Sequence record: PQ287644.1
Direction: 5' to 3' (one strand)
DNA: 64,000 nt
Shown in pieces: positions 1 through 37,805 of the stretch. The translations under genes were made by a program, and so were the position numbers. Below the pieces are notes generated by a model. The model did no database searches. It was given only the letters and a program-made list of their open reading frames with translations, and was not told the origin of the DNA. Each line of letters starts with the position of its first letter. Within the stretch, counting starts at the first letter, position 1.

Positions 1-3000
1 ATGACAGACGAACAAGACACATCCCTTTCCTATGCTAAATGGTTGGTTAAGTACCTGAGATGCAACAACCTACCCAAAGAACTGATTGATGATAAACGCC
101 TCCGTATTGATTGGGAGGCTCGAACAGACGATGAAACCCTTTTAGCTCACTTCAATGAAGACAGCTTAAGTGGTATTAAGACTGTTCGTTTTCTCAAGGA
201 CTTTTTCAACTACCAAGCGGGTTATGATCGGGAGACCCGGAATACCAGTTTCCTCAGAACCACCGAAGTGTTCAGGCAACAGGGGATCAATAACTTTTAC
301 TTTATCCTCCAATTGAACAATCCCCTGTTGAAAGGGGTGGATCCCTTTGATCCTAACCTCACTCCTGAGCAACAGGTGTGGGTCCTGGAGGAGTGTCGGA
401 GTAACTTTTGGTACTTCCTACGGGAAGTCTGCCGGTTAAAGCCGAATCAGCCCTTCTTAGCGAACCGGGGGAATATCAGTTTTATTTGGTCGTATTTGAA
501 TCACATTACCACCTACATGATCATGCCGCGGCAACAGGGTAAGCAGCAGCGGAACAGTGCTAAGGTTCGTATTGTACCTAAAGATACCCTGAAGACCATT
601 ACCCCTCAGGATACCTGGAAACGGATTGAACACCTACGGGTGGGGGATCGAGTCCTGGACCGTTCCGGGAAGCCGTGTCAGGTGATTGGTATTCATCCCC
701 AGGGTAAACGCCGGTTGTATCGTGTCATTACCAGTGATGGACGAGCTACAGACGTAGGGACTGAACATCTGTGGACCTTGAAGGATTATTCCAACTGCCT
801 CAATGGACGTGCACTCTGGAATGACTATTCGACCGTTGATGTCATTAACCTGTTGAAGAAGAAGGTGAAGCTTCAATTGCCGTTACCGGCTCCGGTACCC
901 GGGAGTGAACAGGACCTTCCTGTTGACCCGTACGTTCTCGGGTTGATCTATTGCGGACAAGATCAAGACGGTAAGGTTATTATCCCCACGCGTACGGATG
1001 CGGTTAAACAGTACGTAGTTGATCATCTCCCTCGGGGGGTAACAGTTATTCAGGGAGTGGCTAACAGTTGCTTAGAACGGACTGATAACCAACCTTATTT
1101 ATTCAACAGGGAACACGGTTTACCGGATCAATACCTAGAAGCCCCTTTAAACGCCCGGAGAGACCTCTTACAGGCGTTTTTAGACGTTAGGGGTAAGGTT
1201 GGTAGGGGTAAGGTCTTTATAGCCTTAAATCGCGTCCTAGGAGGTCAACTGGCGTATTTAGCCCGTAGTCTAGGTGGAACCGGTAAAGTCACCAAGAACG
1301 GAGTAGAGATTACCCTACCGGAAGAGGTACCTCCGTTCAAGTTCAGGGAAGAGAGTGTCGTCTTTGATAATCGGTTGCTGATCGACCGAGTGACCTTCGT
1401 AGGGGATGACGACTGTACCTGTATTGAAGTCGATAACAGTGAACAGTTGTATTTGACCGATGACTTCATTGTGACCCACAACACGGTATCGGTTCAGGTG
1501 ATTGACTTCTGGTTAACGTACATCATGGGCCGGGGGTATACGAGCCACTTGATTACCTTGAAGTCGGATAACCGAGCTCAGTTCATTGCGGCTATTAAAC
1601 AGATTCGGAGTTCAATTCCCTCGTATTTGATTAACTCGACCTACAAGGACAAGGATGCTGGTACCAGTCTGACCTACAAGGCCTTTGGGGAAGATAACGT
1701 TAATACGCTGTACATTAACGTCCCTCAGATCAGTCAGGATGCAGCAGGGGATCTCGGTCGGGGGTTACGGGTAGGGACTACCAACTACGATGAGTCCGGG
1801 TATATTCGGTTCATCGACACCATCATTGACGGGTGTTCCCCGTCCTCGCTAACGGAAATGGCGTTGTGTAGAGAGCAGGGGTTGCCGTATGGGATTACGC
1901 ACATTACGACCCCCAATACCACGCTCCATCCCAGCGGGGAGTTTATGTTCAATAAACTCATGAGTGCAACGGAGTGGCGGGAGAAGTTCTTTGATTGCTT
2001 CAGTGAGAGTCACTTGAGGCAGATGTTACTCAGGGCTTCCCCTACGAAGACAACCTCTCCGTCAGTCTCCATGGTGTACAATTACCTTCAACTGGGTAAG
2101 GACAAAGCCTGGGTGCGGGAAACCATTGACCTGCTAGGATTGAGTTTGGCGAAAGCCAAGATCGACTTATTGCTCATGTGGGTGGAAGATGGGGAGAATC
2201 GGTTGTTTGACGATGTGACCCGGGAATCCATTAACAACATGAAGCGGGACGTGGTGTGGAGTAAGGAGTATCGGGACTGTAACCTGTACGTGGACTTCTT
2301 TGTGACCCAACAGGAATTGTTGGAGATGGCAAAGAAGGAGTACAATGACCATTTCCTGATTGGTGTGGATACGTCCTCAGCCATTAACAAGGATGCCTGC
2401 ACCATTGTGATTCGCAGTATGAAGACGGGTAAGGTCATTGGGGTGGGACGATATCCCTTAACCTTCTTGGATGATGTCACAGCCATTGTTGTGGATTTGC
2501 TGGACGTGATTCAGAACAGCACCTTGATCATAGAGCGTAACTACGCACATCACATGATCGACAGTCTGTTGATTATGCTGCCGGCTAAGGGTATGGATCC
2601 CTTTAAACGGGTCTTTAACCAAATCTACCAAGACACCGTCAATAACGCTAAGGAGTTTGAGGAAGTCCAGAACACCAAATTTGCTTACCGGAATAAAGCG
2701 TTCTACCTGAAGTATAAACAATACTTCGGGTTCGTAACGACCAAGACCAGTCGGGAAGTCCTGTACGGCCTCATCCAAGAGGCGGTCGGGAATACCGGGT
2801 ACGGCCTCTGTTATGCGAAGCTCGCGGACGAATTGATCAACCTGAAACTCAAGGGGGATCGAATCGACCACGATGCGAAGCAGCACGATGACTTGGTCAT
2901 TGCGTGGCTACTGAGTTACTGGTTCATTAAGCTCGGGGAGAACAAGTCTTTGTACGGGATTCCTCCAGGGATTGCCTTAACGGACACCCGTAACTTACTG

Positions 3001-3267
3001 AACTCTGTTCAGAACCAAGGACGAACCGAGTATGAGCCGTACGTGGTTCAACTCATCGATAAAGTCCGGAGTAAGGTTCACAGCCTAACTGAAGAACTGA
3101 TGAGCACCCAGGACAATATCTTAGCACTTCGTCTAGAGGTGGAGATTCGGAAGTTAGCCAAGATGTTGCCTCCGGAACAGAATCGCATGATGACCATTGA
3201 CGTGCTGTTGGAGAACGCTAAAGTGGAACGCAACAAACGCCTACTGCAACAACGCAGAACAGCATAA
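1..3267 (+). CDS. terL: Terminase large subunit, interrupted by an intein
   Basis: Walker A PRQQGK|T is split by the intein. Walker B TTNYDE and nuclease-domain motif IGVDTS are present, and the later DHDAKQHDD segment fits terminase nucleases. Confidence 0.95.
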   Translation: MTDEQDTSLSYAKWLVKYLRCNNLPKELIDDKRLRIDWEARTDDETLLAHFNEDSLSGIKTVRFLKDFFNYQAGYDRETRNTSFLRTTEVFRQQGINNFYFILQLNNPLLKGVDPFDPNLTPEQQVWVLEECRSNFWYFLREVCRLKPNQPFLANRGNISFIWSYLNHITTYMIMPRQQGKQQRNSAKVRIVPKDTLKTITPQDTWKRIEHLRVGDRVLDRSGKPCQVIGIHPQGKRRLYRVITSDGRATDVGTEHLWTLKDYSNCLNGRALWNDYSTVDVINLLKKKVKLQLPLPAPVPGSEQDLPVDPYVLGLIYCGQDQDGKVIIPTRTDAVKQYVVDHLPRGVTVIQGVANSCLERTDNQPYLFNREHGLPDQYLEAPLNARRDLLQAFLDVRGKVGRGKVFIALNRVLGGQLAYLARSLGGTGKVTKNGVEITLPEEVPPFKFREESVVFDNRLLIDRVTFVGDDDCTCIEVDNSEQLYLTDDFIVTHNTVSVQVIDFWLTYIMGRGYTSHLITLKSDNRAQFIAAIKQIRSSIPSYLINSTYKDKDAGTSLTYKAFGEDNVNTLYINVPQISQDAAGDLGRGLRVGTTNYDESGYIRFIDTIIDGCSPSSLTEMALCREQGLPYGITHITTPNTTLHPSGEFMFNKLMSATEWREKFFDCFSESHLRQMLLRASPTKTTSPSVSMVYNYLQLGKDKAWVRETIDLLGLSLAKAKIDLLLMWVEDGENRLFDDVTRESINNMKRDVVWSKEYRDCNLYVDFFVTQQELLEMAKKEYNDHFLIGVDTSSAINKDACTIVIRSMKTGKVIGVGRYPLTFLDDVTAIVVDLLDVIQNSTLIIERNYAHHMIDSLLIMLPAKGMDPFKRVFNQIYQDTVNNAKEFEEVQNTKFAYRNKAFYLKYKQYFGFVTTKTSREVLYGLIQEAVGNTGYGLCYAKLADELINLKLKGDRIDHDAKQHDDLVIAWLLSYWFIKLGENKSLYGIPPGIALTDTRNLLNSVQNQGRTEYEPYVVQLIDKVRSKVHSLTEELMSTQDNILALRLEVEIRKLAKMLPPEQNRMMTIDVLLENAKVERNKRLLQQRRTA
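544..1482 (+). mobile_element. Class-3 intein (313 aa) in terL with degenerate LAGLIDADG domain
   Basis: Starts with Gln after QQGK and ends ...FIVTHN before Thr. WCT triad: TEHLW, CTCIEV, VTHN. Decayed endonuclease blocks YVLGLIYCG and LLQAFLDVRG. Confidence 0.93.
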
Positions 3268-3275
3268 GACCTGAC

Positions 3276-3306
3276 CCTCCTGGAGCCCCACAAGGGCTCC
3301 AGGAGG
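3276..3306. terminator. Hairpin between convergent genes, likely bidirectional terminator
   Basis: cctcctggagccc-cacaa-gggctccaggagg, a perfect 13-bp stem. Confidence 0.75.
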
Positions 3307-3360
3307 TATCGGGTTATTTCTGCTTCAGAAAGGGCGGTATAACCCACTTAGTTACAAGGG

Positions 3361-3657
3361 TTACGCTACAGCAAGCAGTGCATGTTCCAGTTCTTGCAGA
3401 GTGTGGCCTTTAGCCGGCTTGCCGTTGGCCAATAGGGTGAAGGCTTCAGAGGCGGTGGTATGATCCAGATACCAACGGTAGTTCGGCGAGTTTTCGTCGA
3501 ACATCGGCGAGCGGGAGGGTTCACCTGGTGGTGTAGGGATCCAAGGGAAGATCATGAACACCCGGATTGACGCTGAACCACTTTCCACCATCACACTAAC
3601 CATGGTGTGCGTATGGCACGAACAGAGAAGCTTTTGGGTCAAGGGGAGTGCGTGCAT
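3361..3657 (-). CDS. Small hypothetical protein (98 aa, start re-assigned to MHALPL)
   Basis: AGGAG lies 8 nt upstream of the ATG at 3657. This start removes the overlap with the upstream gene. Confidence 0.55.
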   Translation of the reverse strand: MHALPLTQKLLCSCHTHTMVSVMVESGSASIRVFMIFPWIPTPPGEPSRSPMFDENSPNYRWYLDHTTASEAFTLLANGKPAKGHTLQELEHALLAVA

Positions 3658-3704
3658 AGTGTCTGCTCCTACGCAGTCTGCATGAATAAATTCCTTGTAA
3701 CTGG

Positions 3705-5066
3705 TTATTCGAAATAATCCTTGGACAGTACGCGCAGTACAATGAACAAGCACAACGCCGTACGAGTGGTTAATACCCACTGAGGGGTTTTACGTCCGGT
3801 AATGGCAATCACAATCTGATCACCTAATTCCCGAATCGTCTTAACCATGTCATTCCGACTCCGACTCGCCCCGTAAGCACCGCGCATCTTGATCAACACG
3901 TTGTAGACTTTACTGCGTTTGATGTTGTTGGCGTGCAGGTAATCAAACAGGTGCAATACGACTGTTTCAGCAAACTGTTTGTACTCAGGGGTTTTGGGGT
4001 TGTTGTACCGCTTAGGGAACTCTTGCAGGGTATACGCCAGCATGTTCATTCGAACATCCTCCAGTACACTGGCTGCATAGTTCATTAACTCTTCCTTGTA
4101 GAACGAGGTTTCCTCTGTCAGGATACGGTCCAGGTACTGAACGTGTTGATTCACGTCTTTCGCTACCGACTTAATGGTCAGTTCATCCCCGAGGTTAACC
4201 TTAGAGTTCTCCAGTTTAACGATGTTGGTCTTGTTCTTGACATCGTGGAAGACTTTGTTAATGTCGTTAATCGCCCTTCTAAGCCTGTTCTGAATATCTC
4301 CTACCATGTAAACGATTTTCTTATCATCGTTCATCTGGGTAAAGGTGTCGTAGTGAATGCCGGTTTTAGGGTTCAGGATAAACTCAGCCCGAGCCTCAAT
4401 CAACGCCCTCCAGCTTCCATACCGTTTAATGTCATACTTCAAGCTCAACCGGTTATAGGTCTCCAGGACAACCTCTTTACGGGCGGTAAAGGGATAGTCG
4501 TTGTGAATGATCGAAGTGAGGCATTTGTAGTGGTACATGCACACCACGTCTTTCATGGCTTGATGTTTGACTTTCTCCGGTAATTTCGAATGATGGATCC
4601 GGTACAGCAAGTAAGGAATGGTCATATTGAACGCATCCCCTACGACCGCCCACTCTTTCTTAATGGCTGCCGCGTTGTGGAGGTTCTCTTTGAGTTCCTC
4701 TTCATCCAGGTCAATGATGTCATTGAACCATTGGTTACGGTCTGCGGTGGTAAAGGTGATCTTCTGCAACCCTAGGTACGGGCTCCCAAAGAACTCCATA
4801 TGGTCCACCACGCCCATACGGCGGGTAATGAACGCATACACGTACTTCTGAAGATCACTCGCCCACCGAGGGGTAATCTCCAAGTACGTTGCCAGTCGAG
4901 TAAAGATCTCCAGGATGGCATGGTTACTCTGGAATTCCACCCCTGACAGTAAGGCTTCATTCCCTTCTACGCCTAAGAGGTCACTATCGGGAGTCTTTGC
5001 CTCTTCAAAGAGACTAAAGATATCCTGGTCCCCTACGAGGTCTTCCGTTCCGTCTAATACTAACAT
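3705..5066 (-). CDS. Conserved jumbo-phage protein, probably virion structural
   Basis: Long ORF; start MLVLDG at 5066 with GAGG RBS; position next to terL as in phiKZ-like phages. Confidence 0.7.
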   Translation of the reverse strand: MLVLDGTEDLVGDQDIFSLFEEAKTPDSDLLGVEGNEALLSGVEFQSNHAILEIFTRLATYLEITPRWASDLQKYVYAFITRRMGVVDHMEFFGSPYLGLQKITFTTADRNQWFNDIIDLDEEELKENLHNAAAIKKEWAVVGDAFNMTIPYLLYRIHHSKLPEKVKHQAMKDVVCMYHYKCLTSIIHNDYPFTARKEVVLETYNRLSLKYDIKRYGSWRALIEARAEFILNPKTGIHYDTFTQMNDDKKIVYMVGDIQNRLRRAINDINKVFHDVKNKTNIVKLENSKVNLGDELTIKSVAKDVNQHVQYLDRILTEETSFYKEELMNYAASVLEDVRMNMLAYTLQEFPKRYNNPKTPEYKQFAETVVLHLFDYLHANNIKRSKVYNVLIKMRGAYGASRSRNDMVKTIRELGDQIVIAITGRKTPQWVLTTRTALCLFIVLRVLSKDYFE

Positions 5067-5082
5067 TGAAAACCCCTCTTGG

Positions 5083-5931
5083 TTAATTCCGACGTGGTGT
5101 TGCCATCCGTATTGCTTCAATACGGGCTTGTTTATCCGACCACGTCATGCAGTTGATCCATGTGTTCTTGAAATACTCTTTGTATTGGGTCCACGCGTCA
5201 CTGTAGGCCTGTATATCGTCCCGTATGGCGTCTAGGGGAACGCCTGAGCGATAAACCGCCTCTTGGGTAGGTCGCCTACAGGTTTTGTAAATATACGCCT
5301 TAACGGCCAATTCAACGAGCTCTGCGAACTGCCGGTAATGACGAGGGTGAATACTGCTCATCCCTTCATCGTATTCCAAGATTACTTTAGCACTCATGGA
5401 ATACGTTCCCGCATTCAACCCAAAGATCACAAAGCAGTTATTACCGGTCATATGGACATTGGTGAACGTGACTGGCATACTGCGGTTAGAACTCAATCCC
5501 CCCAGTAAGCCATCCATCATGTCATTCAGTACTCCGGACCCACACATCGTGTTCTCATTCACCCCGGCTCCTAACTGACCAACTGCGGAACTCATACTCC
5601 CCAAATAGACTTCTGTCACACTAATGATCTTAGCACCCCGAGTCGTCGCTTCCGGTACGTTCACCTCTACACACCCATTCCCCCGATCACGGATCATGGA
5701 TCCTCCCAGATCCAACAACTCCGTCTTCCCACCCGCTACGTTACATTCCGGTAGAACAATACGGTGAATCACCTTCTCCCGTATACCCTGTTCCACAGTT
5801 GTCTGGTTAACCAGGTTATACCAATTCCCCGCATAGTTCGCATTGGGGGTTTCAAACGCTAGCTTTAACAAGTACTCGTCAATATCACTACCGCTTACTA
5901 CACGATTGATCGCATGGTCTACTGGATTCAT
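5083..5931 (-). CDS. Conserved jumbo-phage protein, probably virion structural
   Basis: 282-aa ORF with ATG start and GAGG RBS; co-oriented with the neighbouring minus-strand genes. Confidence 0.7.
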   Translation of the reverse strand: MNPVDHAINRVVSGSDIDEYLLKLAFETPNANYAGNWYNLVNQTTVEQGIREKVIHRIVLPECNVAGGKTELLDLGGSMIRDRGNGCVEVNVPEATTRGAKIISVTEVYLGSMSSAVGQLGAGVNENTMCGSGVLNDMMDGLLGGLSSNRSMPVTFTNVHMTGNNCFVIFGLNAGTYSMSAKVILEYDEGMSSIHPRHYRQFAELVELAVKAYIYKTCRRPTQEAVYRSGVPLDAIRDDIQAYSDAWTQYKEYFKNTWINCMTWSDKQARIEAIRMATPRRN

Positions 5932-6490
5932 TTAAGGTAACCTCGTCTAACAAACCTTAACGGGATGTATAAACCCGTTAACTTAGGATTAGGGAATCAT
6001 AACATCTTCCAGTGATTCCTCATTCGGTTTCCATTATATGTTCCACTTACCCAATTCTCATTTTGGAGGAGGGGGTAAGATTCTTTAGGACTGAGCGACA
6101 TGAGCCTACGGCGAGTGGAGTGAAGGAGTAAAGAATCTTGGGGGAGGAGGCCCTACCGAAGGTAGAGTCCAGAGAAGAGAAAAGAGAAAATCCGAAGGAA
6201 AAACCTATTACTCCGTAATAGCTTTTGCTCTTTATATAAGCCCCGGAGGGGCTTATAAGGCAATAAAATTTAACTTTACTATTTATTATTATTATAGGAA
6301 ATTGCTTTTTTATTTAAAAAAGGAAAAATGAAGAGGAAATGAAAATGGGAAAATACCTTTTAAATATTCCCTAAATTTCATTTACTCTTAAAGAAGTACC
6401 CCTTTCAAAGTTAATTACCCCGACCGGCATTCCCGAACAGGGAAGCCGGCGTATAGGGTTTATAATGCAATACTGCAATAGGGTTAATGG
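5932..6490. other. AT-rich non-coding region with hairpins (candidate origin or divergent control region)
   Basis: Inverted repeats at 6077-6087/6129-6139, 6205-6221, 6235-6257 and 6424-6449; purine-rich tract 6165-6203; A/T-rich 6260-6400; no credible ORF. Confidence 0.45.
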
Positions 6491-6491
6491 A

Positions 6492-6509
6492 TTTCAGTTC
6501 TACATTATC
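6492..6509 (+). promoter_or_regulatory. Candidate phage early promoter (TTTyaaaCCtAyATTAtc motif)
   Basis: tttcagttctacattatc; divergent copy of a motif found 5 times in intergenic positions. Confidence 0.5.
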
Positions 6510-6580
6510 ATTGGGTAATGAAAGAATACGGTTATTCGTATTGATATGTTTTGTTAAACCCAGAAAAGGAAGAGTGTGTA

Positions 6581-7135
6581 ATGACAACGATTGCTTATCG
6601 TGACGGTATAATGGCAGCGGATACCCGGGTGGTCAACGGGGCCGATATGATCAACCTCGGAGAGCAACGTAAGATCCACGAACCGGGGGAAGGAGAGTAC
6701 TGGAGTGTCAATGGTGACCGTATTATCTGTTTTGGTTTGTCGGGGAGTCTGACGGATCTGTTGGCCTTTAAAGAACTGTTGAGTGAAGGGATTACCTTTA
6801 AGACCAAAGCACCTGACCACCTCGTTGGGGACTCGAATATGCTCTGTGTGGGTGAACAGGGTAATGTTTGGCTGGTTTCAGCATTTAAACAACGAGACGG
6901 GAGTATGGTGTTTACAGTGTCATGCGTACAACCCCCGTTTGCAATTGGATCGGGGGGTATTTACGCCAGTTCGGTGATGGCGGTGGGTAAAAGTGCGGTG
7001 GATGCAGTTAAAGTGGCGTGTAAGTTGGATATCTTTTCTGGCGGTCGTATTGATACCTGGGAACTCCCCCTATTCCAGAAACCCCCAGTAAGCGCCCTGA
7101 ACCGGCCGCCGATAAGACGGCAAAATAATCCCTAG
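6581..7135 (+). CDS. Proteasome beta/HslV-like N-terminal threonine (Ntn) hydrolase
   Basis: M-TTIAY start (Thr1 nucleophile), AADTR, RKIH, AIGSG and DIFSGG match beta-subunit catalytic motifs. RBS aaggaag precedes ATG 6581. Confidence 0.8.
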   Translation: MTTIAYRDGIMAADTRVVNGADMINLGEQRKIHEPGEGEYWSVNGDRIICFGLSGSLTDLLAFKELLSEGITFKTKAPDHLVGDSNMLCVGEQGNVWLVSAFKQRDGSMVFTVSCVQPPFAIGSGGIYASSVMAVGKSAVDAVKVACKLDIFSGGRIDTWELPLFQKPPVSALNRPPIRRQNNP

Positions 7136-7535
7136 GGGGTAAGACCCTCAGAATGTAGGCGATGGAAACTAGAGTGTGTAGGTATTTTATGCCGATGACC
7201 TGCATTCACTCCATCGCCGGTCCTGGTGGGAAGGTTAGGAGTGTTAGACACCCACCACCCCTCAACTGCCCAAGCCTATTCTGTCAGGCTTGAGAGGGTT
7301 GCCTACAAAACGCTCCGCCCCTCCAGCTCTATGTCACTATGATGTAGGGCTGGAGGTTTTACTTCTTTTGTTTTTTATTTACCCAGGAGGGGATATCTTA
7401 TACCGTTAAAGTGACCTGTTTCCACGCCATGGTTCTCTGGGTCACTGTAACGGTACAACGTTATTGATCCTCTTGGATGCGCTAACGGGTGGTGTTATGG
7501 TTATATCGGCGGTTGCCCACCCGTTAGTCTTTTTT
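7132..7535 (+). ncRNA. Candidate structured non-coding RNA(s) or regulatory leader
   Basis: Series of stems: 7158-7166/7210-7218, 7225-7230/7251-7256, 7263-7301, 7321-7355 plus U-tract, 7401-7416/7440-7455, about 7481-7528 plus U-tract; no convincing ORF. Confidence 0.4.
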
Positions 7536-7551
7536 TGATTACGCTAGATAA

Positions 7552-7569
7552 TTTGAAACCTAAATTATT
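7552..7569 (+). promoter_or_regulatory. Candidate phage early promoter upstream of phuZ
   Basis: tttgaaacctaaattatt. Confidence 0.65.
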
Positions 7570-7632
7570 AGCAGGCTATTGGAGAATAGTCTTTTTAATG
7601 ACTTCCCTGTAAACCAAAGAGAGCGATTCGAT

Positions 7633-8595
7633 ATGTCTCAGATTCAATACTACCTCATGGGCGGCGCAGGTATCAACATTGGCGCGGGTTTGAAAGAACA
7701 TTCCCGCACGCGCGTGAACAGTGATGCGGGGATGGTAGGTTTCGATACCAGTGATAAGAACTTCACTGCGGCGTTCCCCATTGAGCAACTCGAAGGGGTG
7801 AACGGGAGTGGTAAGGATTCCACCAAGCACTACGACAAACTCCTCCCCTTCGTAGCGGCTAACCTGAAGAAACACCGTCCCGGTGTTCACAACATCATCG
7901 TAGCCAGTACCGCTGGTGGTACTGGACGTGTTATGGCGATGATTGCGTTGCGCCTGCTGGTCGAGTCGGGTAAGAACGTCATTCTCTGTCTGATCTCGGA
8001 ACACACCTCCCTGGTGGATAAAGAGAACGCGGTTAACGCCCTCCGTTCCTTTGCCAACCAGTGCCAACCCAATCAACTGAACCGTCCGGTGTGCTACATG
8101 GAGTTCCTCAATACGCCGAACCTGACCCGTAAGGAAGTCAACCTTCAGGCGATTGATTCACTGAATCTCCTGAGTCTCCTCTTTGATCCCGGTAATACGG
8201 AAATCGATGAGGAAGACATTAAACGCTTCTTCAATTACTCGGCGGGGGGTAAAACCAGGCCGGCGTTGAGTCGTATTCATTTCTACGACCAGGATGGTGC
8301 AGCGGACTATACCGGTAAGGTACCGGTCTCGGTCGCCAGCCTGTACCCGAACAACGATGACGTGGTTCCTCGGTTTATGGGATCGGTTTACCGGACGACG
8401 GGTATCTTCTCCCCCAACAGTGATCGTCCGGAGGACATCAAAGAGCTGCACGTGACCCTCGATCACGGTGAAGCCCTGGAAGAACTGGAGAAAGAGATCG
8501 AAGGGCTGGAAACGGTTCAAGCTCAAGCTGCCGTTGACTTCTCTCAGCAGAAGGACATTTCGGAAGGATCGAACGATCTGGGCTTCATGCTGTAA
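7633..8595 (+). CDS. phuZ: PhuZ phage tubulin
   Basis: GGAGINIG, GSGKD and STAGGTG tubulin/FtsZ motifs; acidic-hydrophobic C-terminal tail; likely start MSQIQ at 7633. Confidence 0.93.
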   Translation: MSQIQYYLMGGAGINIGAGLKEHSRTRVNSDAGMVGFDTSDKNFTAAFPIEQLEGVNGSGKDSTKHYDKLLPFVAANLKKHRPGVHNIIVASTAGGTGRVMAMIALRLLVESGKNVILCLISEHTSLVDKENAVNALRSFANQCQPNQLNRPVCYMEFLNTPNLTRKEVNLQAIDSLNLLSLLFDPGNTEIDEEDIKRFFNYSAGGKTRPALSRIHFYDQDGAADYTGKVPVSVASLYPNNDDVVPRFMGSVYRTTGIFSPNSDRPEDIKELHVTLDHGEALEELEKEIEGLETVQAQAAVDFSQQKDISEGSNDLGFML

Positions 8596-8610
8596 GACAG
8601 ACAGTGAATC

Positions 8611-8652
8611 GCTAAGGTAGGGAGCTCACGCTCCCTACCTTAGCCTTTATTA
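8611..8652 (+). terminator. Rho-independent terminator after phuZ
   Basis: gctaaggtagggagc-tcac-gctccctaccttagc followed by ctttatta. Confidence 0.85.
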
Positions 8653-8733
8653 CGCTTTGGGGTATTTTTTATAATGGGTTTTTACTGAAATGGGCATTAT
8701 TATACAGGCTTAATTAAATATAGGGGCTAGAAG

Positions 8734-9027
8734 GTGGCTATAAGCTTCTCTGTTGATTTATCAAGGGGTTACCTATACCGACCTACCGGTCCAGGTAAAA
8801 ACGTCGTGTTAAGGAAAATAGACCGGTTTGACGTGGTGCACTGTTTACAGGCGTTAGGGTACCACAACCTTAACGAACGCAGTCTGAATCGTCGAGCCGC
8901 GGTCTTTATTCCGTCTCTGGAGGAGGACATCACGAAATTCACGATCGGTGTACCGAGTGATGCACAGGTTCGTATTCGTGGGATTGGGAAGTGCTCCCAA
9001 CGGTTATTGATTACATTTGTTTATTAA
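8734..9027 (+). CDS. Hypothetical protein
   Basis: 97-aa ORF with GTG start, first gene of a small-gene run. Confidence 0.55.
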   Translation: MAISFSVDLSRGYLYRPTGPGKNVVLRKIDRFDVVHCLQALGYHNLNERSLNRRAAVFIPSLEEDITKFTIGVPSDAQVRIRGIGKCSQRLLITFVY

Positions 9028-9041
9028 GGAGACGTCGTCCC

Positions 9042-9608
9042 ATGTTACTGTTCAATGTGAAGGAGATGACGAATGGTATCCTCATGCCATCTGAATTGTC
9101 TCGGGTAGAACGAGAGACCATTATTAAGGACTTGATTGAAACGGCCTTGAGTATCTTCAATAATCCTTCTTTGTGTGACGGGATCCTGGATGACCTGTTG
9201 GAGCATTATGAGTTTAACGTAGGGATACTGAATACCGACCGTATCGTTCTGGATCTCGTAAAGGTCATTAAACACACCGCCCGTAAGCTGGGGTGGGACA
9301 GTCGTTTGAAGGCGAAGGTGGAATTCAAGCAGGTCGGGAGTGGGTATCATAAAGCCCGTATTGTAATGGATTTGGATGAAACCCTCCAAGCGTTGTCTTC
9401 GAATGTAACAGAACCGGTTCGCCTCAACGACGTTATTAGTGACCATCCAGAAGTCGAGATGCTCAATGAAATCATTTCACTACGATCTAGCAAAGCCCCA
9501 AGGAGAGTTCCGGTACTACCAGATCGACGTCCAGTGGTTGTTAAAGGAAATCAGGAGTCAGGTTGGGTACCTGGTTACCGGGAGCATTACCGGAAAATCG
9601 GTTACTGA
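9042..9608 (+). CDS. Hypothetical protein
   Basis: AAGGAG RBS before ATG 9042; its 3' end overlaps the next gene by 143 nt. Confidence 0.65.
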   Translation: MLLFNVKEMTNGILMPSELSRVERETIIKDLIETALSIFNNPSLCDGILDDLLEHYEFNVGILNTDRIVLDLVKVIKHTARKLGWDSRLKAKVEFKQVGSGYHKARIVMDLDETLQALSSNVTEPVRLNDVISDHPEVEMLNEIISLRSSKAPRRVPVLPDRRPVVVKGNQESGWVPGYREHYRKIGY

Positions 9609-29489: not shown

Positions 29490-29505
29490 GCAACAATAAC
29501 CTTAC

Positions 29506-29537
29506 CAGTACCTAGCGGGATATCCCGCTAGGTACTG
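29506..29537. terminator. Bidirectional terminator hairpin
   Basis: cagtacctagcggga-ta-tcccgctaggtactg between convergent genes. Confidence 0.75.
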
Positions 29538-29564
29538 TGTTTTCTCTATTTTATTCCAGTATTT

Positions 29565-29894
29565 TTACGCTTGGGTCGTATTACTACGTGCAACGGCCTG
29601 GGTCAAATGGGCCTCGTCAATTATCTTGTAACTTTGCATGCCCGCACAATCCATAAAGGGATCTTCAATCCCATTCAGATAGGCGGTGACCCACAGCATA
29701 TGGTTTTCAACCCCTTGAACCCTCAGGAATCGATAGAAGTCATACCGATAAGCGTACAGTTGTGCGTGAGAGACGATTGGAATCTCCTGGGTTTGACGGA
29801 GGAGTATTTCCCGTTCGGACCGCACCAAGACTTTGAACCGTTCAGTAAAGAAGAAATCACGTCCTTCACTGAAGTTAACAATAGACAGTGGCAT
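29565..29894 (-). CDS. Small hypothetical protein, possibly LysM-like baseplate component
   Basis: 109 aa; LYAYRYDF...LWVTAYLNGIEDP loosely resembles T4 gp53/LysM wedge proteins. Confidence 0.55.
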   Translation of the reverse strand: MPLSIVNFSEGRDFFFTERFKVLVRSEREILLRQTQEIPIVSHAQLYAYRYDFYRFLRVQGVENHMLWVTAYLNGIEDPFMDCAGMQSYKIIDEAHLTQAVARSNTTQA

Positions 29895-29925
29895 GGAGAA
29901 GATCCTTATCGATGCAGCTAACCAT

Positions 29926-29943
29926 TTTTGAACCTATATTATC
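29926..29943 (+). promoter_or_regulatory. Candidate early promoter upstream of nvRNAP beta-C
   Basis: ttttgaacctatattatc. Confidence 0.7.
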
Positions 29944-30005
29944 TTCAGGAATGAGTTGAGACCGTCTTTATTGAAAAGACTGCTGTTGACTGTAATGGAG
30001 CCGTT

Positions 30006-32312
30006 ATGAGTAAAGAAAAATTGAATCAGGACCTGAAAGGTGTAAGCAGTGAAATCCGTGCCGCACTGGGTACAGAGGATCCGGTTCTTACCCCTGACAG
30101 TGCAGCGGGTCAATTCCTCCAGGAAGTTCGTTACAAGTATCCCTGCGGGGAGAATCAAATCCATCCTGCTTTAGTGGGTGTCAGCAGTAACCTGATTCTC
30201 TTCCCGCACGAAGCCTCCGCGGGTCGTCTCTATATGGCGGGTAACATGATCCCTAAATCCGTGCCGACCGAAGGAGCGGGTGAACGGATGATGGTAACCG
30301 GGTACGAATTTGAGGAACATTACGGTGGAACGGCTCGTAAGGTCGAAGCCCCTGCGAATATGCTGGTGGAAGAGATCTTCTTCGTTCAGAGTCTGGTTCC
30401 GGGTAAGGATACGGATGACTGGAATTCGATTTACGTGGTCTTTAAGAACGACGAACAGAACGCCTACGACCTTCTGGAGCTACCTCGGTATAACACTCAT
30501 AACCACTACGTTGGGTTCGAATATAAATACGATAAAGAGAAACTCCGTAAGCTCCGTAAAGGTGCCACTTTCGCTAAAGGGACCGTCTTCGCTAAGAGTC
30601 CTCGTATCAGTGAGAATGGGGAATGGTGTTTTGCAATGCCGACCTTGGTAGCCGCCTATTCGGACCAAAGGACTGAGGAGGATGGTGTGCTTATCACCCG
30701 TTCCTACGCGGAACGTTCGGCTTGTATGTTCAAGCACGAGTTCAGCTATGAATGGAATGAGGATGAATGGATTCCTCTGATGCTGTACGGAACGGACGAG
30801 AACCCCCAACCGCTCCCTGAGTCGGGTGATAACATCCGTGAGGATGGCATCGTCATGGGCTTCCGTCGCCGCATCAAAGAGAACGCGCTGGTTTCCCTGA
30901 CCAAGAAGTCCCTGCGAGAACCAGATCTGGTGTACGACAAGTTGTTCTACGCGCCTGTGGATGCGGTTGTGATGTCAGTCACTGTTCGGTCGGATCGGAT
31001 GAAGAACCGGTCCAATAACCGAGGTACGGATTACATCGAACAACACCACAACGCCATGCTGGACCGCTATGAGAAACGCCAGAATGAAATGTGGAACAAT
31101 GTGATCCGGTGGTACGAAGGGAAGATTGCCGCCAACCGCGGGGAAGACATTCCCATTACCTTTAACCTCGATACGTTCATTCGGAACGCGTATGGCAACT
31201 ATACTCGCAATGGGTTGGGTCGTATTAACCCATTGGCCCGAGTGGAACGGTGGGATAAGCTGAAAGATTGGAACGTGACCATCGAACTGAAGGAACGGGT
31301 TAAAGGTCGTGTTAAATTCAAGTACGCGGGTTTGAACGGTGACAAAGGGGTGTGTGTACGAGTCATTGAAGACGACGAAGCCCCAACCTATCCGGACGGG
31401 ACTCGGGCAGAGTTCATTAAAGATAACGTACCAGCGTTCCGTCGCCAGATCTTTTCGTTGCTTATGGAACTGAGTATCAACTATGTGAACATGAACGTTC
31501 AACGGGAAGTCAGACACCTACGGTTACAAGGGGATTATGAAGGCGCTTTCCAGGCGTTGATGACGTTCTATGAAACCGGTTTCCCTGAATTCAGTGAATT
31601 GGTTGCTCACGCGTTGGTTACGGAGGAGGAGAAACGTGAGCACGTCGACGATGTCTGTCGCCGGAAGATTTCTGTGCATGTGGTCAGTAACACGAAGTTG
31701 TATGGTGTGAACCTGATCAACGCCCTGCGTCGTCAATACCCGTATAAGCCGCAGAAAGCCATTATCGTGAACGCGCTGGGGGAACGAGTGGAAACCGAGA
31801 ACCCTATCCTTATCAGCTGTCAGGACATTATGCTCCTGGATAAGTTTGGTACGGACATGAGTGCGCAGAGTATGCCGAAGGCTAACCTCTTTGGTATGCC
31901 AGCGAAGATGAACGAAGGCAGTAAATACGCCACCCCCATGAAAGACAGCAATAACAAGAATACCGGTGAAACCGAAGGCCGGTTGCAAGTCAGTCATGCG
32001 GGCGGGCAGGAAATGATCAAGCAACTGGCTCTGGCGTATTCCCCCGAGAACCAGAAAAAAGCCTCCCAACGGGTTATTCGTGCGGATGATCCGTTTGAGA
32101 TTCCTCGGTTGATTAAACCGGAGGAGTATTTGGGGAATCGGGCGTTGAAAATGGCGGTGGGAATGTTGTCGGATTCGGGTTATCGGCTGCGAGCTGAACT
32201 ACCCGGTGATCGTCGGGAATATCCAACCTTTAACATGGATGAAATCCCAGGGTTGGATGACGAGACCTTGAAGCAGCTTCAGTCATCCGAGAAACCCACT
32301 CAAGAACCTTAA
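30006..32312 (+). CDS. rpoB: nvRNAP beta C-terminal subunit (phiKZ gp71-73-like), intron-less
   Basis: EDGVLIT, KYAGLNGDKGV and TGETEGRL beta motifs. Confidence 0.9.
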   Translation: MSKEKLNQDLKGVSSEIRAALGTEDPVLTPDSAAGQFLQEVRYKYPCGENQIHPALVGVSSNLILFPHEASAGRLYMAGNMIPKSVPTEGAGERMMVTGYEFEEHYGGTARKVEAPANMLVEEIFFVQSLVPGKDTDDWNSIYVVFKNDEQNAYDLLELPRYNTHNHYVGFEYKYDKEKLRKLRKGATFAKGTVFAKSPRISENGEWCFAMPTLVAAYSDQRTEEDGVLITRSYAERSACMFKHEFSYEWNEDEWIPLMLYGTDENPQPLPESGDNIREDGIVMGFRRRIKENALVSLTKKSLREPDLVYDKLFYAPVDAVVMSVTVRSDRMKNRSNNRGTDYIEQHHNAMLDRYEKRQNEMWNNVIRWYEGKIAANRGEDIPITFNLDTFIRNAYGNYTRNGLGRINPLARVERWDKLKDWNVTIELKERVKGRVKFKYAGLNGDKGVCVRVIEDDEAPTYPDGTRAEFIKDNVPAFRRQIFSLLMELSINYVNMNVQREVRHLRLQGDYEGAFQALMTFYETGFPEFSELVAHALVTEEEKREHVDDVCRRKISVHVVSNTKLYGVNLINALRRQYPYKPQKAIIVNALGERVETENPILISCQDIMLLDKFGTDMSAQSMPKANLFGMPAKMNEGSKYATPMKDSNNKNTGETEGRLQVSHAGGQEMIKQLALAYSPENQKKASQRVIRADDPFEIPRLIKPEEYLGNRALKMAVGMLSDSGYRLRAELPGDRREYPTFNMDEIPGLDDETLKQLQSSEKPTQEP

Positions 32313-32351
32313 CCCCATGATAGACTCACGGTATGGAGAGGAATGTAACTC

Positions 32352-35300
32352 ATGGTAATGAAGATCAAACTCCGTGAATGGGCTAATTTACCAGAAGAAA
32401 CTGTTCTCCGTTGGTTAAATACCCGTCGGTGGGTGGAGGTCACGGATGACCTGGACCAGGTCGCTTTAACGGATACCTACGCCCTGATCATTACCTGGCA
32501 TGGAATGATCATCCACCGGCATTATAACGATGTTCCCTATTCCATTAAGGAAATGGTGCCCAGTAACAAGGTGGAAGGGGGTGAAGACACCGTCTATAAC
32601 GATGGAACCAACGCGACGCCTATTAACCAGTTCTTAAAGGTCATTCTTCCTACGATTATTGACCCGGTGGAAGTGGACGGGATTAAACGGCTTATTCATA
32701 TCTGGCAGAATAAGCTGAATAACCTGCTGGTGGTGATGAGTGAGCGTTACGTTATTTCGGCCACCGCTGAATCCGTAGCGGAGTTCATGGAAGATGAAGG
32801 GATCTCTGGAATACGGGACCGTGTCCTGAGCAAGGAGATTTCAATTGATGAGGGCGAGCGGGAGTTTGCGGATTATGTCCGGACCTCTCATTCCATTGCC
32901 AACAACACCCTCACCCTGCTGTCGCGTACGGGTGGGGTGGCCATTAACCAGGCGTATCAGAAGACGATCATCCGGGGTAAGGTCTTTGACCTGAACAACT
33001 CGATCATGCCGAATGCGATTACGGTTCCGTATGCGCATGGGATCACCAACCTGGCTGATATGCTGGGTGAACGGAATGCAGCGGGTAAAGCCGGAGTTTT
33101 GTCTTCAAAGATAAAAATCCCTGGTGGATGGAAAACCATGGGTAACATTCGGGTGGGTGATGAAGTCGTTACACCCGATGGAGGTACCGCTAAGGTGCTG
33201 GCAGTTCACCCACAAGGTGTAACCAAGGTTGTACGGGTGCACTTCAAAGACGGTCGATATACTGACGTTAGTCCAGATCACCTGTGGAAGGTTAGACGTC
33301 ATCATTGGTGCAACGATAAAGCCATGGCTAAACTCACTCGGGAGGAAGTGGAAGAACGTGTATGGCGAGTCATCACCACCAATGAGTTGAAAGACTATAT
33401 TGGTCTGTCAACTAAGGTATACGTCCAACTGATTGAACCTGAAAGAAATGCCGATAAACCCTTCAAAATTCACCCGTATGTGCTCGGTGTCTTGTTGGGG
33501 GATGGATGCATTAGTCAAAAGGCTGTGGATATCACCAAACCTTATCAACAGCTATTCGATAAGGTCCAATCGCTATTGCCAGAACATTTGGAATGTGTTT
33601 GGCGGAGCAATGGTGATAAAGAACCTAAAACGTTTGCGATCCGTTTTAAAGATCGTCGGTCCGAACAGCACATCAACTGGCATATCCGTGATGGCCTGAA
33701 GGAACTGGGCTTGTATGGAATGCGGTCGTGGGGAAAAGTCATTCCCGAAGAATATCTTCACGGATCGGCCAAACAGCGTTTGGAGCTCCTCCAAGGACTG
33801 TTGGACACAGACGGAACTGTGGACAAACACAAATCGGTTAGCTTTAGCTCTTCGTCTAAGTTACTCTCCCTCGGAGTGCAATACTTGGTCAGAAGCCTAG
33901 GGGGGATGGCGCGTCTCCAAGAACGTACTTCCCACTACACCCACAATGGAGAAAAAGGGAAGGTCGTACGGACTATCGGGTTTATATCCGATACCCTCGA
34001 CCGGAAGAACTCTTTACCCTAGACCACAAACGGGAACGTGCGGTCTCGCACCAGCATACGGAAACCCTGAGACTGCAAGTAACCCATATTGAAGAACGTC
34101 CTGATGAGGAGACACAATGCATTACGATCGATCATCCTGATCATCTGTACATTACAGACGACTTCATTGTCACCCACAACAGCTTGACCAATAACGGGAA
34201 GGCCCTGAAATCATCGGAATGGTTCCACCGGAAGGTACACATCCTGTCCGCTGTGGTAGCGGATATCGATCATTTCATGGACTGTGGTACGACCACTACA
34301 GTACCGATCCGAATTCCCAATATGCAAGCGGCAATGGCATTGTTGGGTAAATTCAGGGTAAAGGATACAGGAGAATTAGAACTCATTGATCAAACCACCG
34401 TGTGGTCAATTAAGCCAGGGGAGTGGGTTAATATTCGTAGTGTAGCCTTCTGTAATCACTACAATAACGCTTCACCCTGCCGGGTATGCTACGGGATGAT
34501 GGCGAGCTCTATCCCGTATAACGTGATAATGAAGAAAGGGGCGAATGTCGGGATGTGGTGCGCCACCTCGATCTGTAACCCCATCGGCCAGGGAATGCTC
34601 TCCACCAAGCATTTCATTCGGAATGCAACGACCCGTAAGTTCGTTCCTGCGACTAAGGATAAGAACGTTATCTATTCCAATGGTGACGATATTTTCCTGA
34701 CTAAGGAACTCTGTGCGCCGGGTACTGAATTGGTGCTCAAAGCCGATATTGTGAACATCCTCTCGGATATCCGTTCCTTGGATGTTCTGGACAACTTGAG
34801 CCTGGATAAACTCCCGTACTTCTCTGAAGTCACATTCCGCTATGAAGTCGAAGACATCATGATGGGGGGTAAAACCCTCCAGCAGCATGCGGCCTGTACC
34901 TCGGTGTCGTCTCGGAATGCCCGGTTCTCGTTGGAGTTCCTGAACTATCTCCTGAGTAAAGGTTGGGCGAACGAAGGTAAGAAACATATTACCGTTGATT
35001 TGAGTGAATGGAATACGCTCAGTCCTATCTTCACACTGCCGTATGTTCGTGAAGACTTGGACATGCACCGGGCTCGGGTAGAGAACTTCATCACGTTCAA
35101 TAAACGCAATAACGCCTGGAGACAGCAGATCGTTACACCCCGTCTCTTTGGTGAGGTCTTAGCGGAATACTGGGGATTGATCAACCAGGAAACGAAAGGG
35201 ATTAACATCATCCATCCTGAGGTCTTGCTCTATTCCACGTTGTGTCGGGATCCCATGCGCGGGGATTATTCCCTGGCGAATGGTAAAGGACCTAAGTATT

Positions 35301-35455
35301 TCGTGAACTTCCAGGAGTGTATCAAAGGCAGAGGGGCGGGTATGCTCATGATCTACGAGAACCAGCAAAATGTGCTGAGCGATCCTAAGACATTCCGTGT
35401 GGTGAACCGTCAGGGGAGTCCGCTGGAGTGCTTCTTTAGCTTAGCGGTGAGTTGA
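32352..35455 (+). CDS. rpoC: nvRNAP beta' C-terminal subunit (gp74-like) with intein; reading frame broken at 33952-33956
   Basis: Bridge-helix region AAGK|SLTNNGKALKSSEWFHRK is joined across the intein. DCGT and CNH...CRVCYG Zn motifs. The two ORFs join by a -1 shift in gAAAAAggg. Confidence 0.88.
33090..34180 (+). mobile_element. Class-3 intein with intact-looking LAGLIDADG endonuclease
   Basis: Ala1 after AAGK; PDHLW; YVLGVLLGDG; LLQGLLDTDG; TQCITI; FIVTHN|S. About 364 aa if one A is restored. Confidence 0.92.
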
Positions 35456-35482
35456 GTGGGTGACCCCGTTCGTTAGTGTGGA

Positions 35483-35516
35483 CCTCTTAAGGGGTCCTCG
35501 GAATCCCCTTAAGAGG
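35483..35516 (+). terminator. Hairpin between beta'-C and helicase
   Basis: cctcttaagggg-tcctcggaat-ccccttaagagg. Confidence 0.65.
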
Positions 35517-35522
35517 TTGATT

Positions 35523-37805
35523 ATGCGAGCAACAGCAACTATCAGCAAAGCGAATCATTACTTCAGAATCAACGGGTTCTATGAGGAATTCGCGGTTCGG
35601 GTAATCTTACCGTTTTGTAAACTGAATCTCTGCAAGATGGCTAAGAAGCCAATACCGGGTACCCGGAAGCAGGCGTGGTTTGTTCAACACGTCTTTGCTC
35701 GGTCGAATTATGACAAGAGTGAATACCGGCTACCCATTGAAACCCTTAAAGAGTTTGTGGAATTTGCGGGCTACAGGGGGTATAAAGAATCCCGCTTGAA
35801 GATTCAGGATGAACCGGAGATCGAAGGCAAGGATGTTGTATTCGAATTCAATCCAGGGTTTGATCAGTTCAGGGAGGGTCAAGGTGAATGGATCGACTAC
35901 ATGCTGAGCGATGGTCACCTGAAGGTCAATAATGCGTCTACGGGCTTTGGGAAGATGCAACCGCTGTACGCGAAGATCAAAGTCCCGGGTGGTTGGAAGA
36001 CAATGAGGGAGATGACCGTCGGTACCGAGGTCATTGCAGCGGATGGTACGGTCACTCAGGTGACTGGTGTTTACCCGCACGGTAAACAACCCATTTACCG
36101 TTTGCACTTCGAAGACGGCCGTTATACCGATGCAGGACTGGATCACCTGTGGAAAGTGTTCACAGAGGAGACTCGGGCATGGACAGTCGTTGATACCCGT
36201 TCCGTACAGACCCTGTTGGCGAAAGAGCCAGAAGGGGTATTTATCCCTCTGTGTGAGCCTGAAGACGGTCCAGAGAAGCCCTTTGTAACGGACCAATTGG
36301 AAGGTTCCCGCCAACAACGGTTGGAACACCTACGACGACTCATGGATGAGAAAGGGTATGTGCGTGATGACGGTAGTCTGTCCTTTTCCAGTGAGGATGA
36401 GGTGGAAAGTACTACGGTTCAATACCTGGTTAGGAGTCTGGGGGGTATTGCTCGAAAGGTACCGTCTACAGGACTGTACCGCCGCAGGCAATACCGGGTG
36501 TACATCAAGCACCCTCGTCCTGAGGAACTCTTTACCCTGACGAATAAGGGTGGTAACTTGGCATCAAAGTCGGGTAACCAGTCCCTTAAGCTCCGGGTGA
36601 ACCGCATTGAATTCATTGGGGAACATGAAGCCCAGTGCATCTCTGTAGCACACCTGGATCGTCTGTACATCACGGACGACTTCATTGTCACCCACAACAC
36701 CTACATGGCCATCCACAGCATGGTGAAGATTGGTAAACGGACCTTAATCACCATGCAACCCCGTTACCAGATCAACTGGATACGGGAACTCAACAAGATC
36801 GTTAAACTCATTCCAGGGGATCTCTTAATCTGGGAGAATACCCTGGAGTCGTTGTATGAGTGTTTAGAAGACGGGAAGTTTGATCCTAAGATTATTATTA
36901 TTCCGATGTCTCGTATTGAGGTCTTCCTCCGTAAGGGGAAAGAGACCCGAGACGGGTTACACATGGATGATTTGATCAAACGGATCAATCCGGGATTAAG
37001 GATCATTGATGAAGGGCATGAAGCGATTCATCAGATCTTCTTGTCCTTAATGTTTGGGAATATCAAGAAACTCTTCCTGCTCTCAGCCACCTTGAAAGCA
37101 GACGATCCCTTTACGAACAAGATGTACCAGTACTTGTTCCCTAAACGGTTACGGTTAAAGGAGGCGGAACCCGAACATTACATCGATGTAGTGGCGTACC
37201 TGTATCGCCTCAACACCCGTCGTTATCATCTCAAGACGGAGCAGTTTGGAGCGTATAACGATAAGACGTTTGAAAAGAGCATCTTAAAGTCGGGTGTACT
37301 CCTGGCATTCTACTTTAAATTGGTCAATAAGGCCTTTAAGGAGTATTACCTCAATGTGAGGCGTGAAGGAACGAAGTGTTTGTTCTTCTTCTCCAGGGTC
37401 AGTATGTGCGATGCCATGTTGGAACTGTTCAGGAAAGAATATCCCGGCTGGGATTTCGAAACCTTTACTGGGGACGATTCCAAGCTGAAAGATAAGAAGG
37501 ACAAGTACTTAAAGCACGAGATCATCATTACAACTCCGAACAGTTGTGGAACAGGTAAGGATATCGGGGGGTTGGTAACGGTGATCTGCGCCCACACGGT
37601 TGCGTCGACTCAGGCTAATAAGCAGATCATTGGACGACTCAGGGCGTTGTCGGGTAAGTTCAATAATGAGATCGACCCTGCCTTTGTGTTCCTGGTGTGT
37701 TTGGACTTAGCGAAGCACGTGGAATATTTAGCCAAACGGGAACAGGTGTTCTTTGAGAAACAGAAGACCTTCAAGCGTATCAATTCGGAATGCTCCCTGG
37801 ACTGA
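35523..37805 (+). CDS. SF2 DExH helicase with intein (phiKZ gp75-like)
   Basis: Walker A STGFGK|T, DEGH, LSAT, GTGKDI and QIIGRLR; start MRATA at 35523. Confidence 0.9.
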   Translation: MRATATISKANHYFRINGFYEEFAVRVILPFCKLNLCKMAKKPIPGTRKQAWFVQHVFARSNYDKSEYRLPIETLKEFVEFAGYRGYKESRLKIQDEPEIEGKDVVFEFNPGFDQFREGQGEWIDYMLSDGHLKVNNASTGFGKMQPLYAKIKVPGGWKTMREMTVGTEVIAADGTVTQVTGVYPHGKQPIYRLHFEDGRYTDAGLDHLWKVFTEETRAWTVVDTRSVQTLLAKEPEGVFIPLCEPEDGPEKPFVTDQLEGSRQQRLEHLRRLMDEKGYVRDDGSLSFSSEDEVESTTVQYLVRSLGGIARKVPSTGLYRRRQYRVYIKHPRPEELFTLTNKGGNLASKSGNQSLKLRVNRIEFIGEHEAQCISVAHLDRLYITDDFIVTHNTYMAIHSMVKIGKRTLITMQPRYQINWIRELNKIVKLIPGDLLIWENTLESLYECLEDGKFDPKIIIIPMSRIEVFLRKGKETRDGLHMDDLIKRINPGLRIIDEGHEAIHQIFLSLMFGNIKKLFLLSATLKADDPFTNKMYQYLFPKRLRLKEAEPEHYIDVVAYLYRLNTRRYHLKTEQFGAYNDKTFEKSILKSGVLLAFYFKLVNKAFKEYYLNVRREGTKCLFFFSRVSMCDAMLELFRKEYPGWDFETFTGDDSKLKDKKDKYLKHEIIITTPNSCGTGKDIGGLVTVICAHTVASTQANKQIIGRLRALSGKFNNEIDPAFVFLVCLDLAKHVEYLAKREQVFFEKQKTFKRINSECSLD
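35955..36698 (+). mobile_element. Class-3 intein (248 aa), endonuclease partly deleted
   Basis: Met1 after GFGK; LDHLW; AQCISV; FIVTHN|T; first LAGLIDADG block missing. Confidence 0.92.

Follow-up and report, generated by a model that had tools for sequence, protein, structure and literature searches.

The window analyzed here, a stretch of 64,000 nucleotides that matches bases 1-64000 of PQ287644.1 at 100% identity, comes from Pseudomonas phage HHBS8_1 and carries three inteins, which interrupt the terminase gene terL, the gene for beta'-C of the non-virion RNA polymerase (RNAP), and an SF2 helicase gene. These three, of four inteins in Elvirus, most probably each represent a site-specific lineage of their own within one very large, phage-associated family of class-3 inteins, a reading to which we assign a probability of roughly 0.78. 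HHBS8_1 is an EL-like Elvirus of the Chimalliviridae, and the window is 97-99% identical to phage EL and to seven other Elvirus records. The interrupted genes are orthologues of EL ORF011, ORF039, and ORF040 (ORF, open reading frame), and the intein proteins are 96-99% identical to those of EL; they are referred to below as the EL inteins.

Class-3 inteins are defined by the lack of an N-terminal nucleophile, a block-B Trp, a block-F Cys, and a terminal Thr-His-Asn (PMC3196547, PMC5050341). None of the inserts in terL, RNAP, and helicase begins with Cys, Ser, or Thr, the first residues being Gln, Ala, and Met, respectively. In block B all three read HLW (His at B:10, Trp at B:12), which aligns with His65-Gln-Trp67 of the MchDnaB1 intein, and in block F the Cys of TCIEV, QCITI, and QCISV falls into one invariant alignment column, the alignment to block F of MchDnaB1 being weak. 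Block G and the downstream junction read VTHN/T, VTHN/S, and VTHN/T, where the stroke marks the junction, and supply Thr G:5, the terminal His-Asn, and a +1 Ser or Thr. The stretches YL(A/V)RSLGG and DDFIVTHN are also present in each, and the best match among solved structures is the class-3 MchDnaB1 intein (6RIX, 6RIY). Judged by sequence, the three inserts are class-3-type inteins of one large family. A first-pass annotation, made from the letters of the window, was exact in their coordinates and first residues and correct in reporting the Trp-Cys-Thr (WCT) triad (HLW, block-F Cys, VTHN) in all three, with the signature columns aligned.

Each intein stands directly after Gly-Lys, at the codons given by that annotation. 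The junctions are MPRQQGK/Q...VTHN/TVSV in terL (ggt aag/acg), ERNAAGK/A...VTHN/SLTN in RNAP (ggt aaa/agc), and STGFGK/M...VTHN/TYMA in the helicase (ggg aag/acc), the terL and helicase inserts being in frame. The site PRQQGKT in terL is the terminase form of the Walker A motif, and A-STGF-GKT in the helicase fits the form [AG]-x4-GK[ST]; GERNAAGKS at the RNAP site is G-x5-GKS and does not match Walker A (G-x4-GK[ST]). The intein-free RNAP protein matches PhiKZ gp74 beta'-C (PDB 7OGP chain D, E = 1.5e-30) and its AR9 counterpart, and the insertion point aligns with G-A-R-K at the start of the bridge helix, which bears out the non-P-loop site in RNAP reported in the first-pass annotation and places it in the beta' bridge helix of a gp74 orthologue. 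The terL host is identified from the record annotation and from orthologues, as its exteins gave no Pfam match to a terminase domain. The RNAP and helicase intein boundaries are proved by natural empty sites in GXNNE2 and GXNNA8, which lack exactly window positions 33090-34180 (1091 nt) in the RNAP gene and have a helicase gene shorter by exactly 744 nt. The RNAP intein is carried by seven of the nine full-length Elvirus genome records and absent in two; the terL intein is found in all nine, so that no empty terL allele occurs among them.

The state of the LAGLIDADG endonuclease differs among the three, in agreement with the graded decay described in the first-pass annotation. The Pfam domain LAGLIDADG_3 is found only in the RNAP intein (E = 2.6e-12), whose motifs LLGDG and LLDTDG both retain the acidic residue. 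In terL the motifs are degenerate (LGLIYCGQ, LDVRG), and in the helicase intein motif 1 is gone together with the stretch that follows it, MDEKG standing where motif 2 would be; neither intein gives a Pfam LAGLIDADG match. The earlier description of the RNAP intein as intact-looking holds for its motifs, but a frameshift in the HHBS8_1 record, weighed below, had gone unnoticed. The features are collected in Table 1.

Table 1. Positions of the inteins, their exteins, and their motifs in the window.
Feature	Position	Strand	Evidence
terL N-extein, ends in Walker A MPRQQGK	1..543	+	ORF 1-3267; PQ287644 annotation; junction as in FishSpeaker and Joad terL
terL class-3 intein, 313 aa, first residue Gln	544..1482	+	signatures; site clade with other terL inteins
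terL intein motifs	HLW 766-774; block-F Cys 1420-1422; THN 1474-1482	+	
terL intein, degenerate LAGLIDADG remnants	928-960 and 1165-1194	+	
terL C-extein, +1 Thr (TVSVQV)	1483..3267	+	ORF 1-3267
Non-virion RNAP beta'-C N-extein (PhiKZ gp74 orthologue), ends GERNAAGK, bridge-helix start	32352..33089	+	PDB 7OGP chain D, AR9 7S00 chain D
RNAP class-3 intein with LAGLIDADG endonuclease, 364 aa in intact alleles, first residue Ala	33090..34180	+	
RNAP intein motifs	HLW 33279-33287; LAGLIDADG 33480-33506, 33786-33815; block-F Cys 34118-34120; THN 34172-34180	+	
A5 homopolymer, A6 in HHBS47_1 and EL	33952..33956	+	frame break within RNAP intein
RNAP beta'-C C-extein, +1 Ser (SLTNNGKALKSSEWFHRK, bridge helix)	34181..35455	+	
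SF2 helicase N-extein (EL ORF040 orthologue), ends in Walker A STGFGK	35523..35954	+	ORF 35460/35523-37805
Helicase class-3 mini-intein, 248 aa, first residue Met	35955..36698	+	
Helicase intein motifs	HLW 36144-36152; block-F Cys 36636-36638; THN 36690-36698	+	
Helicase intein, first LAGLIDADG motif deleted; remnant of second	36330-36356	+	
Helicase C-extein, +1 Thr (TYMAIH)	36699..37805	+	Helicase_C domain (Pfam)

A search of 1.84 billion representative proteins yields 10,514 relatives. The 178 inteins extracted from the best 150 of them lie mostly after a P-loop GK, with a minority elsewhere, e.g., at GFLPG/, AYMRGR/, and FFREAGK/S, and from their sequences the class-3 family lives mainly in P-loop Gly-Lys/Thr or Gly-Lys/Ser sites. 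The motifs KIKxPGGW, HFxDGRYTD, PRPEELFTL, YLVRSLGG, and DDFIVTHN recur in many foreign inteins and are family-wide rather than EL-specific; all five had earlier been listed as a bond among EL inteins.

The terL intein has its nearest foreign relatives by tblastn in the terL inteins of phages FishSpeaker (39%) and Joad/RisingSun (36%), which occupy the identical site MPRQQGK/TVSVQV, and the EL, FishSpeaker, and Joad inteins form a terL-site clade with support 100/99. This phylogeny shows a terL intein lineage common to other chimalliviruses. The RNAP intein, by comparison, is nearest among foreign inteins to the helicase inteins of Raoultella phage VB_ZK_P1 (57%) and FishSpeaker (55%), and the VB_ZK_P1 helicase intein has the same unusual start, AGVLSS. 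Over the columns retained by the mini-intein, foreign helicase inteins reach 58-65% identity with the RNAP intein, versus 49% for the EL helicase intein. Of 280 phage records with a match, the 60 that matched best show an RNAP-site intein in Elvirus only; metagenomes hold three RNAP orthologues with an intein at the same GK/SL site, their exteins being 52-61% identical. On splicing-domain columns the EL RNAP intein and two of these metagenomic inteins (exteins 57-61%) form a clade (93/84), and this RNAP trio sits inside a helicase-site clade (98/94) that leaves out the EL helicase intein. The placement of RNAP-site inteins within a clade of helicase P-loop inteins means that the RNAP gene did receive an intein by an ectopic jump from a P-loop. 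The EL helicase mini-intein itself pairs with that of P0054 (97/91), with which it has the same endonuclease-deletion boundaries, and the P0054 host helicase is only 50% identical. Inteins from two types of helicase host are thoroughly mixed on the tree, from which inteins must often change from one P-loop to another, with the RNAP site as a further target. In the history that these trees show, helicase P-loop inteins swap freely between two helicase families, and one of them moved to the bridge-helix site of RNAP before today's Elvirus isolates separated; the RNAP intein is not a recent copy of the resident helicase intein. All four combinations of presence and absence at the RNAP and helicase sites exist in nature.

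Several observations weigh against separate lineages. Over their final 42 nt, the RNAP and helicase inteins have 93% identity versus ~69% elsewhere, and synonymous codons match at 11 of 13 positions in these 42 nt, compared with 40 of 104 outside them (p = 0.002). The approximately unbiased (AU) test leaves the RNAP and helicase EL pair unrejected (p = 0.26-0.40), the best trees do not unite the four RNAP-site inteins in one clade, mgL016 (from metagenome contig L016) standing apart from the others, and the long branches of the decayed inteins weaken all placements.

The position of mgL016 bears on a first alternative, in which helicase inteins entered the RNAP site in several independent events rather than as one lineage, which we consider possible though doubtful. 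It joins the other three RNAP-site inteins in no tree, and no bootstrap tree gives a single change. Set against this, the AU test does not reject a single clade of all four (p = 0.19), the branch of mgL016, a decayed mini-intein, is long, and the EL, L013, and L014 RNAP-site inteins have a distinctive insertion signature in common, WC(N/S)...AK.LT.EE...WR.

The DNA at the 3' end of the inteins bears on a second alternative, proposed in the first-pass annotation, in which one intein was copied ectopically inside the EL genome among helicase, RNAP, and terL by way of GK(T/S)-coding DNA. The near identity of the DNA encoding DDFIVTHN had been reported there correctly: over the final 24 nt the RNAP and helicase inteins do not differ at all, and terL matches them at 22 of 24. 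With the codon usage of the window, the chance of eight identical DDFIVTHN codons is 0.002, and foreign inteins have the same peptide with different codons. From this 3' identity and the synonymous-codon match, some exchange within the genome probably occurred, and its simplest reading is a short gene-conversion patch between the neighboring RNAP and helicase inteins, a patch that does not extend to terL. Membership in one family, the same GK/T or GK/S context, the adjoining position of the RNAP and helicase genes, and the unrejected pair are likewise in line with copying within the genome. That the whole set arose in this way is nevertheless improbable. In a careful tree of 38 rows, the AU test rejects a clade of the three EL inteins (p = 0.0099); quick trees of 77 and 82 rows, which included endonuclease columns, rejected neither the RNAP and helicase pair nor the trio (p = 0.40 and 0.21), so that the careful tree is the only one to reject the trio. 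The terL intein is 27-33% identical to the other two EL inteins and 36-40% to foreign terL inteins; for terL the proposal is largely refuted. The closer resemblance of the RNAP intein to foreign helicase inteins than to the resident one, the RNAP-site alleles in phages with distant exteins, the deletion that the helicase intein has in common with a distant phage, and the family-wide nature of the listed motifs speak against it as well. All three inteins group by site or deletion with those of other taxa, an outcome that the first-pass annotation had itself named as contrary to its proposal. Of ectopic spread, the older jump from P-loop to RNAP stands, and the spread of one intein within the HHBS8_1 genome does not.

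The occupied RNAP and helicase sites have the core GGTAAA/A-CT in common, and of the central 36 positions the VB_ZK_P1 helicase site and the EL RNAP site agree at 19. Compared pairwise, the target sites of the three EL inteins agree at 9-11 of 24 positions, which is near chance beyond the GK codons. Mimicry of a Walker A site at the RNAP site is plausible for the core GGTAAA/A-CT DNA only. Gly-Lys precedes 10 of 2318 Ser, Thr, and Cys residues in the ORFs of the window (0.4%), a frequency that makes the GK/S context at the RNAP site unlikely by chance. In 93 intein-free RNAP orthologues, the insertion point reads by alignment GK/S in 38, GK/A in 27, and GM/S in 15, from which many relatives are expected to be unable to splice an intein there; Ala at +1 would make the site unusable. 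The nearest intein-free orthologues (P0154-P0156, P0159, P0163; 65-71% identity) alternate between GK/S and GK/A. The -1 Lys codon is AAG in an empty RNAP allele (GXNNE2; window 33087-33089) and in an empty helicase allele (L014:6394-7936), AAA in the RNAP-site and full-length helicase-site alleles examined, and AAG before the decayed EL helicase mini-intein. AAG at -1 could reflect endonuclease resistance or co-conversion, a hint from two alleles only.

Sequence and the published chemistry of class-3 inteins suggest how the hosts would be restored. Each host gene would be translated with its insert in place; the block-F Cys would attack the bond between Lys and the first intein residue at the N-terminal junction, the acyl group would then pass to the +1 Thr or Ser, and with cyclization of the terminal Asn the host protein (terminase, RNAP beta'-C, or helicase) would be resealed. 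A LAGLIDADG homing endonuclease that looks intact is retained in the RNAP intein alone, which probably still homes between intein-carrying and intein-free Elvirus genomes. The endonuclease would gain access to phage DNA inside the RNAP precursor, on entering the phage nucleus, or by import once spliced out, and by analogy with PhiPA3 gp210, introduced below, it could act as a weapon against intein-free relatives in co-infection. With the bridge helix interrupted by the intein, splicing could further control when the non-virion RNAP becomes active. Taken jointly, an RNAP intein that is active and segregating in nature, an endonuclease that enters the phage nucleus, a weapon against relatives, and a splicing gate make an unlikely combination. 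Natural Elvirus isolates that either carry or lack the RNAP and helicase inteins, their flanks being ~98% identical, form a ready system for homing and competition, and in nucleus-forming phages only an intron endonuclease has been studied so far in this respect. A review of these phages does not mention inteins.

In the deposited HHBS8_1 sequence, the RNAP insert is 1091 nt long, no multiple of three, and is not one open frame. With A5 in place of A6, frame 0 runs into a stop at 34020-34022, which leaves blocks F and G in a different frame, the downstream part having no start codon of its own. The searches used the intact allele of HHBS47_1, an otherwise identical sister isolate, and the naturally intein-free allele of GXNNE2, so that the A5 break was not read through. 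Two further one-base homopolymer contractions, at ~35490 (G4 for G5) and ~35504 (C4 for C5), are found in HHBS8_1 only, all other records including HHBS47_1 differing from it there. They fall in a hairpin-like inverted repeat, CTTAAGGGG(G)...(C)CCCCTTAAG, at window positions 35485-35510 between the RNAP and helicase genes, both arms of which are one base shorter in HHBS8_1 than in HHBS47_1, EL, and GXNNE2. Three such contractions within 1.6 kb indicate a sequencing error rather than biology, and sequencing error is the most likely source of the frameshift. Programmed -1 frameshifting and transcriptional slippage at A5 were considered and rejected, given the lack of an X XXY YYZ heptamer, the short run, and the further contractions. 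A real frameshift, with beta'-C broken or expressed by slippage and the intein dead or conditional in HHBS8_1, is very improbable: A5 does stand in the deposited sequence, the annotation of the record cuts the gene into three coding sequences (CDS), and a split annotation recurs in MIZ-Pa99, but the sister isolate is in frame, the other contractions are unique to HHBS8_1, the downstream part could not start by itself, a canonical slippery heptamer is absent and A5 is short for slippage, and the non-virion RNAP is required in phages of this family. In MIZ-Pa99 (PV472050.1, 44166-45258) the RNAP intein region is 1093 nt long, matches in two pieces, and belongs to a gene annotated as two CDS, so that a second deposited Elvirus record seems to contain an indel that breaks the frame. 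In the HHBS8_1 record, homopolymer errors probably break an essential gene in its annotation.

A fourth intein was looked for within the 64-kb window and none was found. Outside the window, at 157016-157801 of the HHBS8_1 genome on the minus strand (L018:43016-43801), lies a fourth class-3 mini-intein of 262 aa that begins with Ala and interrupts a gene for an SNF2-like helicase (CDS 155432-158254) at the junction KPGSGK/AMPL...VTHN/TFTS. Orthologues of this helicase are 21 of the representative hosts, that of FishSpeaker included. This intein is not known to be among the catalogued inteins of phage EL.

EL ORF011, ORF039, and ORF040 were each first labeled 'putative ATP-dependent DNA helicase', and such a label on all three is the usual sign of intein similarity. 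To judge by the matching ORF numbers, the inteins are presumably the InBase entries PhiEL ORF11, ORF39, and ORF40, probably listed there as class 3, and ORF039 was presumably not yet recognized as RNAP beta' at that time; a literature search on PhiEL inteins found no papers. In GXNNE2 (PV400809.1), the intein-free helicase and RNAP genes (CDS 112850-114388 and 114458-116470) are labeled 'terminase large subunit, intein-containing', and several other records name RNAP or helicase genes terminase or DarB-like. These wrong labels are annotation-transfer errors that stem from intein similarity. At window position ~39224, GXNNE2 has ~1188 nt extra, with unusually divergent adjoining sequence (5.7-8.8% mismatches, 39000-39500); this block may represent a further mobile insert or else a gene replacement.

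The Elvirus inteins add new details on a known kind of element, and the first-pass annotation was sound in observation and half right in interpretation. Class-3 inteins are known in mycobacteriophage Bethlehem DnaB, Deinococcus Snf2, Catera gp206, and MchDnaB1 (PMC3196547, PMC7664689). Like these, the inteins described here have no N-terminal nucleophile, the WCT triplet, a terminal HN, P-loop GK/T insertion, and a LAGLIDADG endonuclease; unlike these, they reside in a chimallivirus terL, two helicases, and RNAP beta', with one site that is no nucleotide-binding loop and with splicing predicted.

Two phage systems and one archaeal intein come closest. In actinobacteriophages, class-3 inteins have been proposed to move from TerL to Cas4 by extein switching, by way of similar DNA at the nucleotide-binding sites (bioRxiv 10.1101/2025.01.02.630785). 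There too an unrelated gene acquires a lineage that stems from the clade of one host site, with short identical DNA and the +1 nucleophile in common, whereas in Elvirus the new site, the RNAP bridge helix, binds no nucleotide and only ~9-10 core bases are common. Both the inteins and host switching by way of P-loop DNA had been described before, so that the headline claim is of little added value; what may be useful is that a lineage of P-loop inteins is documented as switching into a catalytic element that binds no nucleotide, which makes the requirement a short DNA core and a +1 Ser rather than an ATPase fold. In a nucleus-forming phage, PhiPA3 gp210 is an HNH homing endonuclease encoded by an intron of a virion RNAP gene and is active in phage competition (PMC11620839). 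In both cases a mobile element with a homing endonuclease interrupts a chimallivirus RNAP gene where a conserved catalytic motif is encoded, and related phages lack the element; unlike gp210, an HNH nickase in a group I intron of virion RNAP beta, the Elvirus element is by its sequence a LAGLIDADG intein of the non-virion beta'-C. Finally, constructs described as 'intein-free mjA'' imply an intein in RNAP subunit A' of Methanocaldococcus jannaschii (PMC2988716). That intein, like the one in Elvirus, lies in the largest-subunit lineage of a multisubunit RNAP. The M. jannaschii A' intein belongs to class 1.

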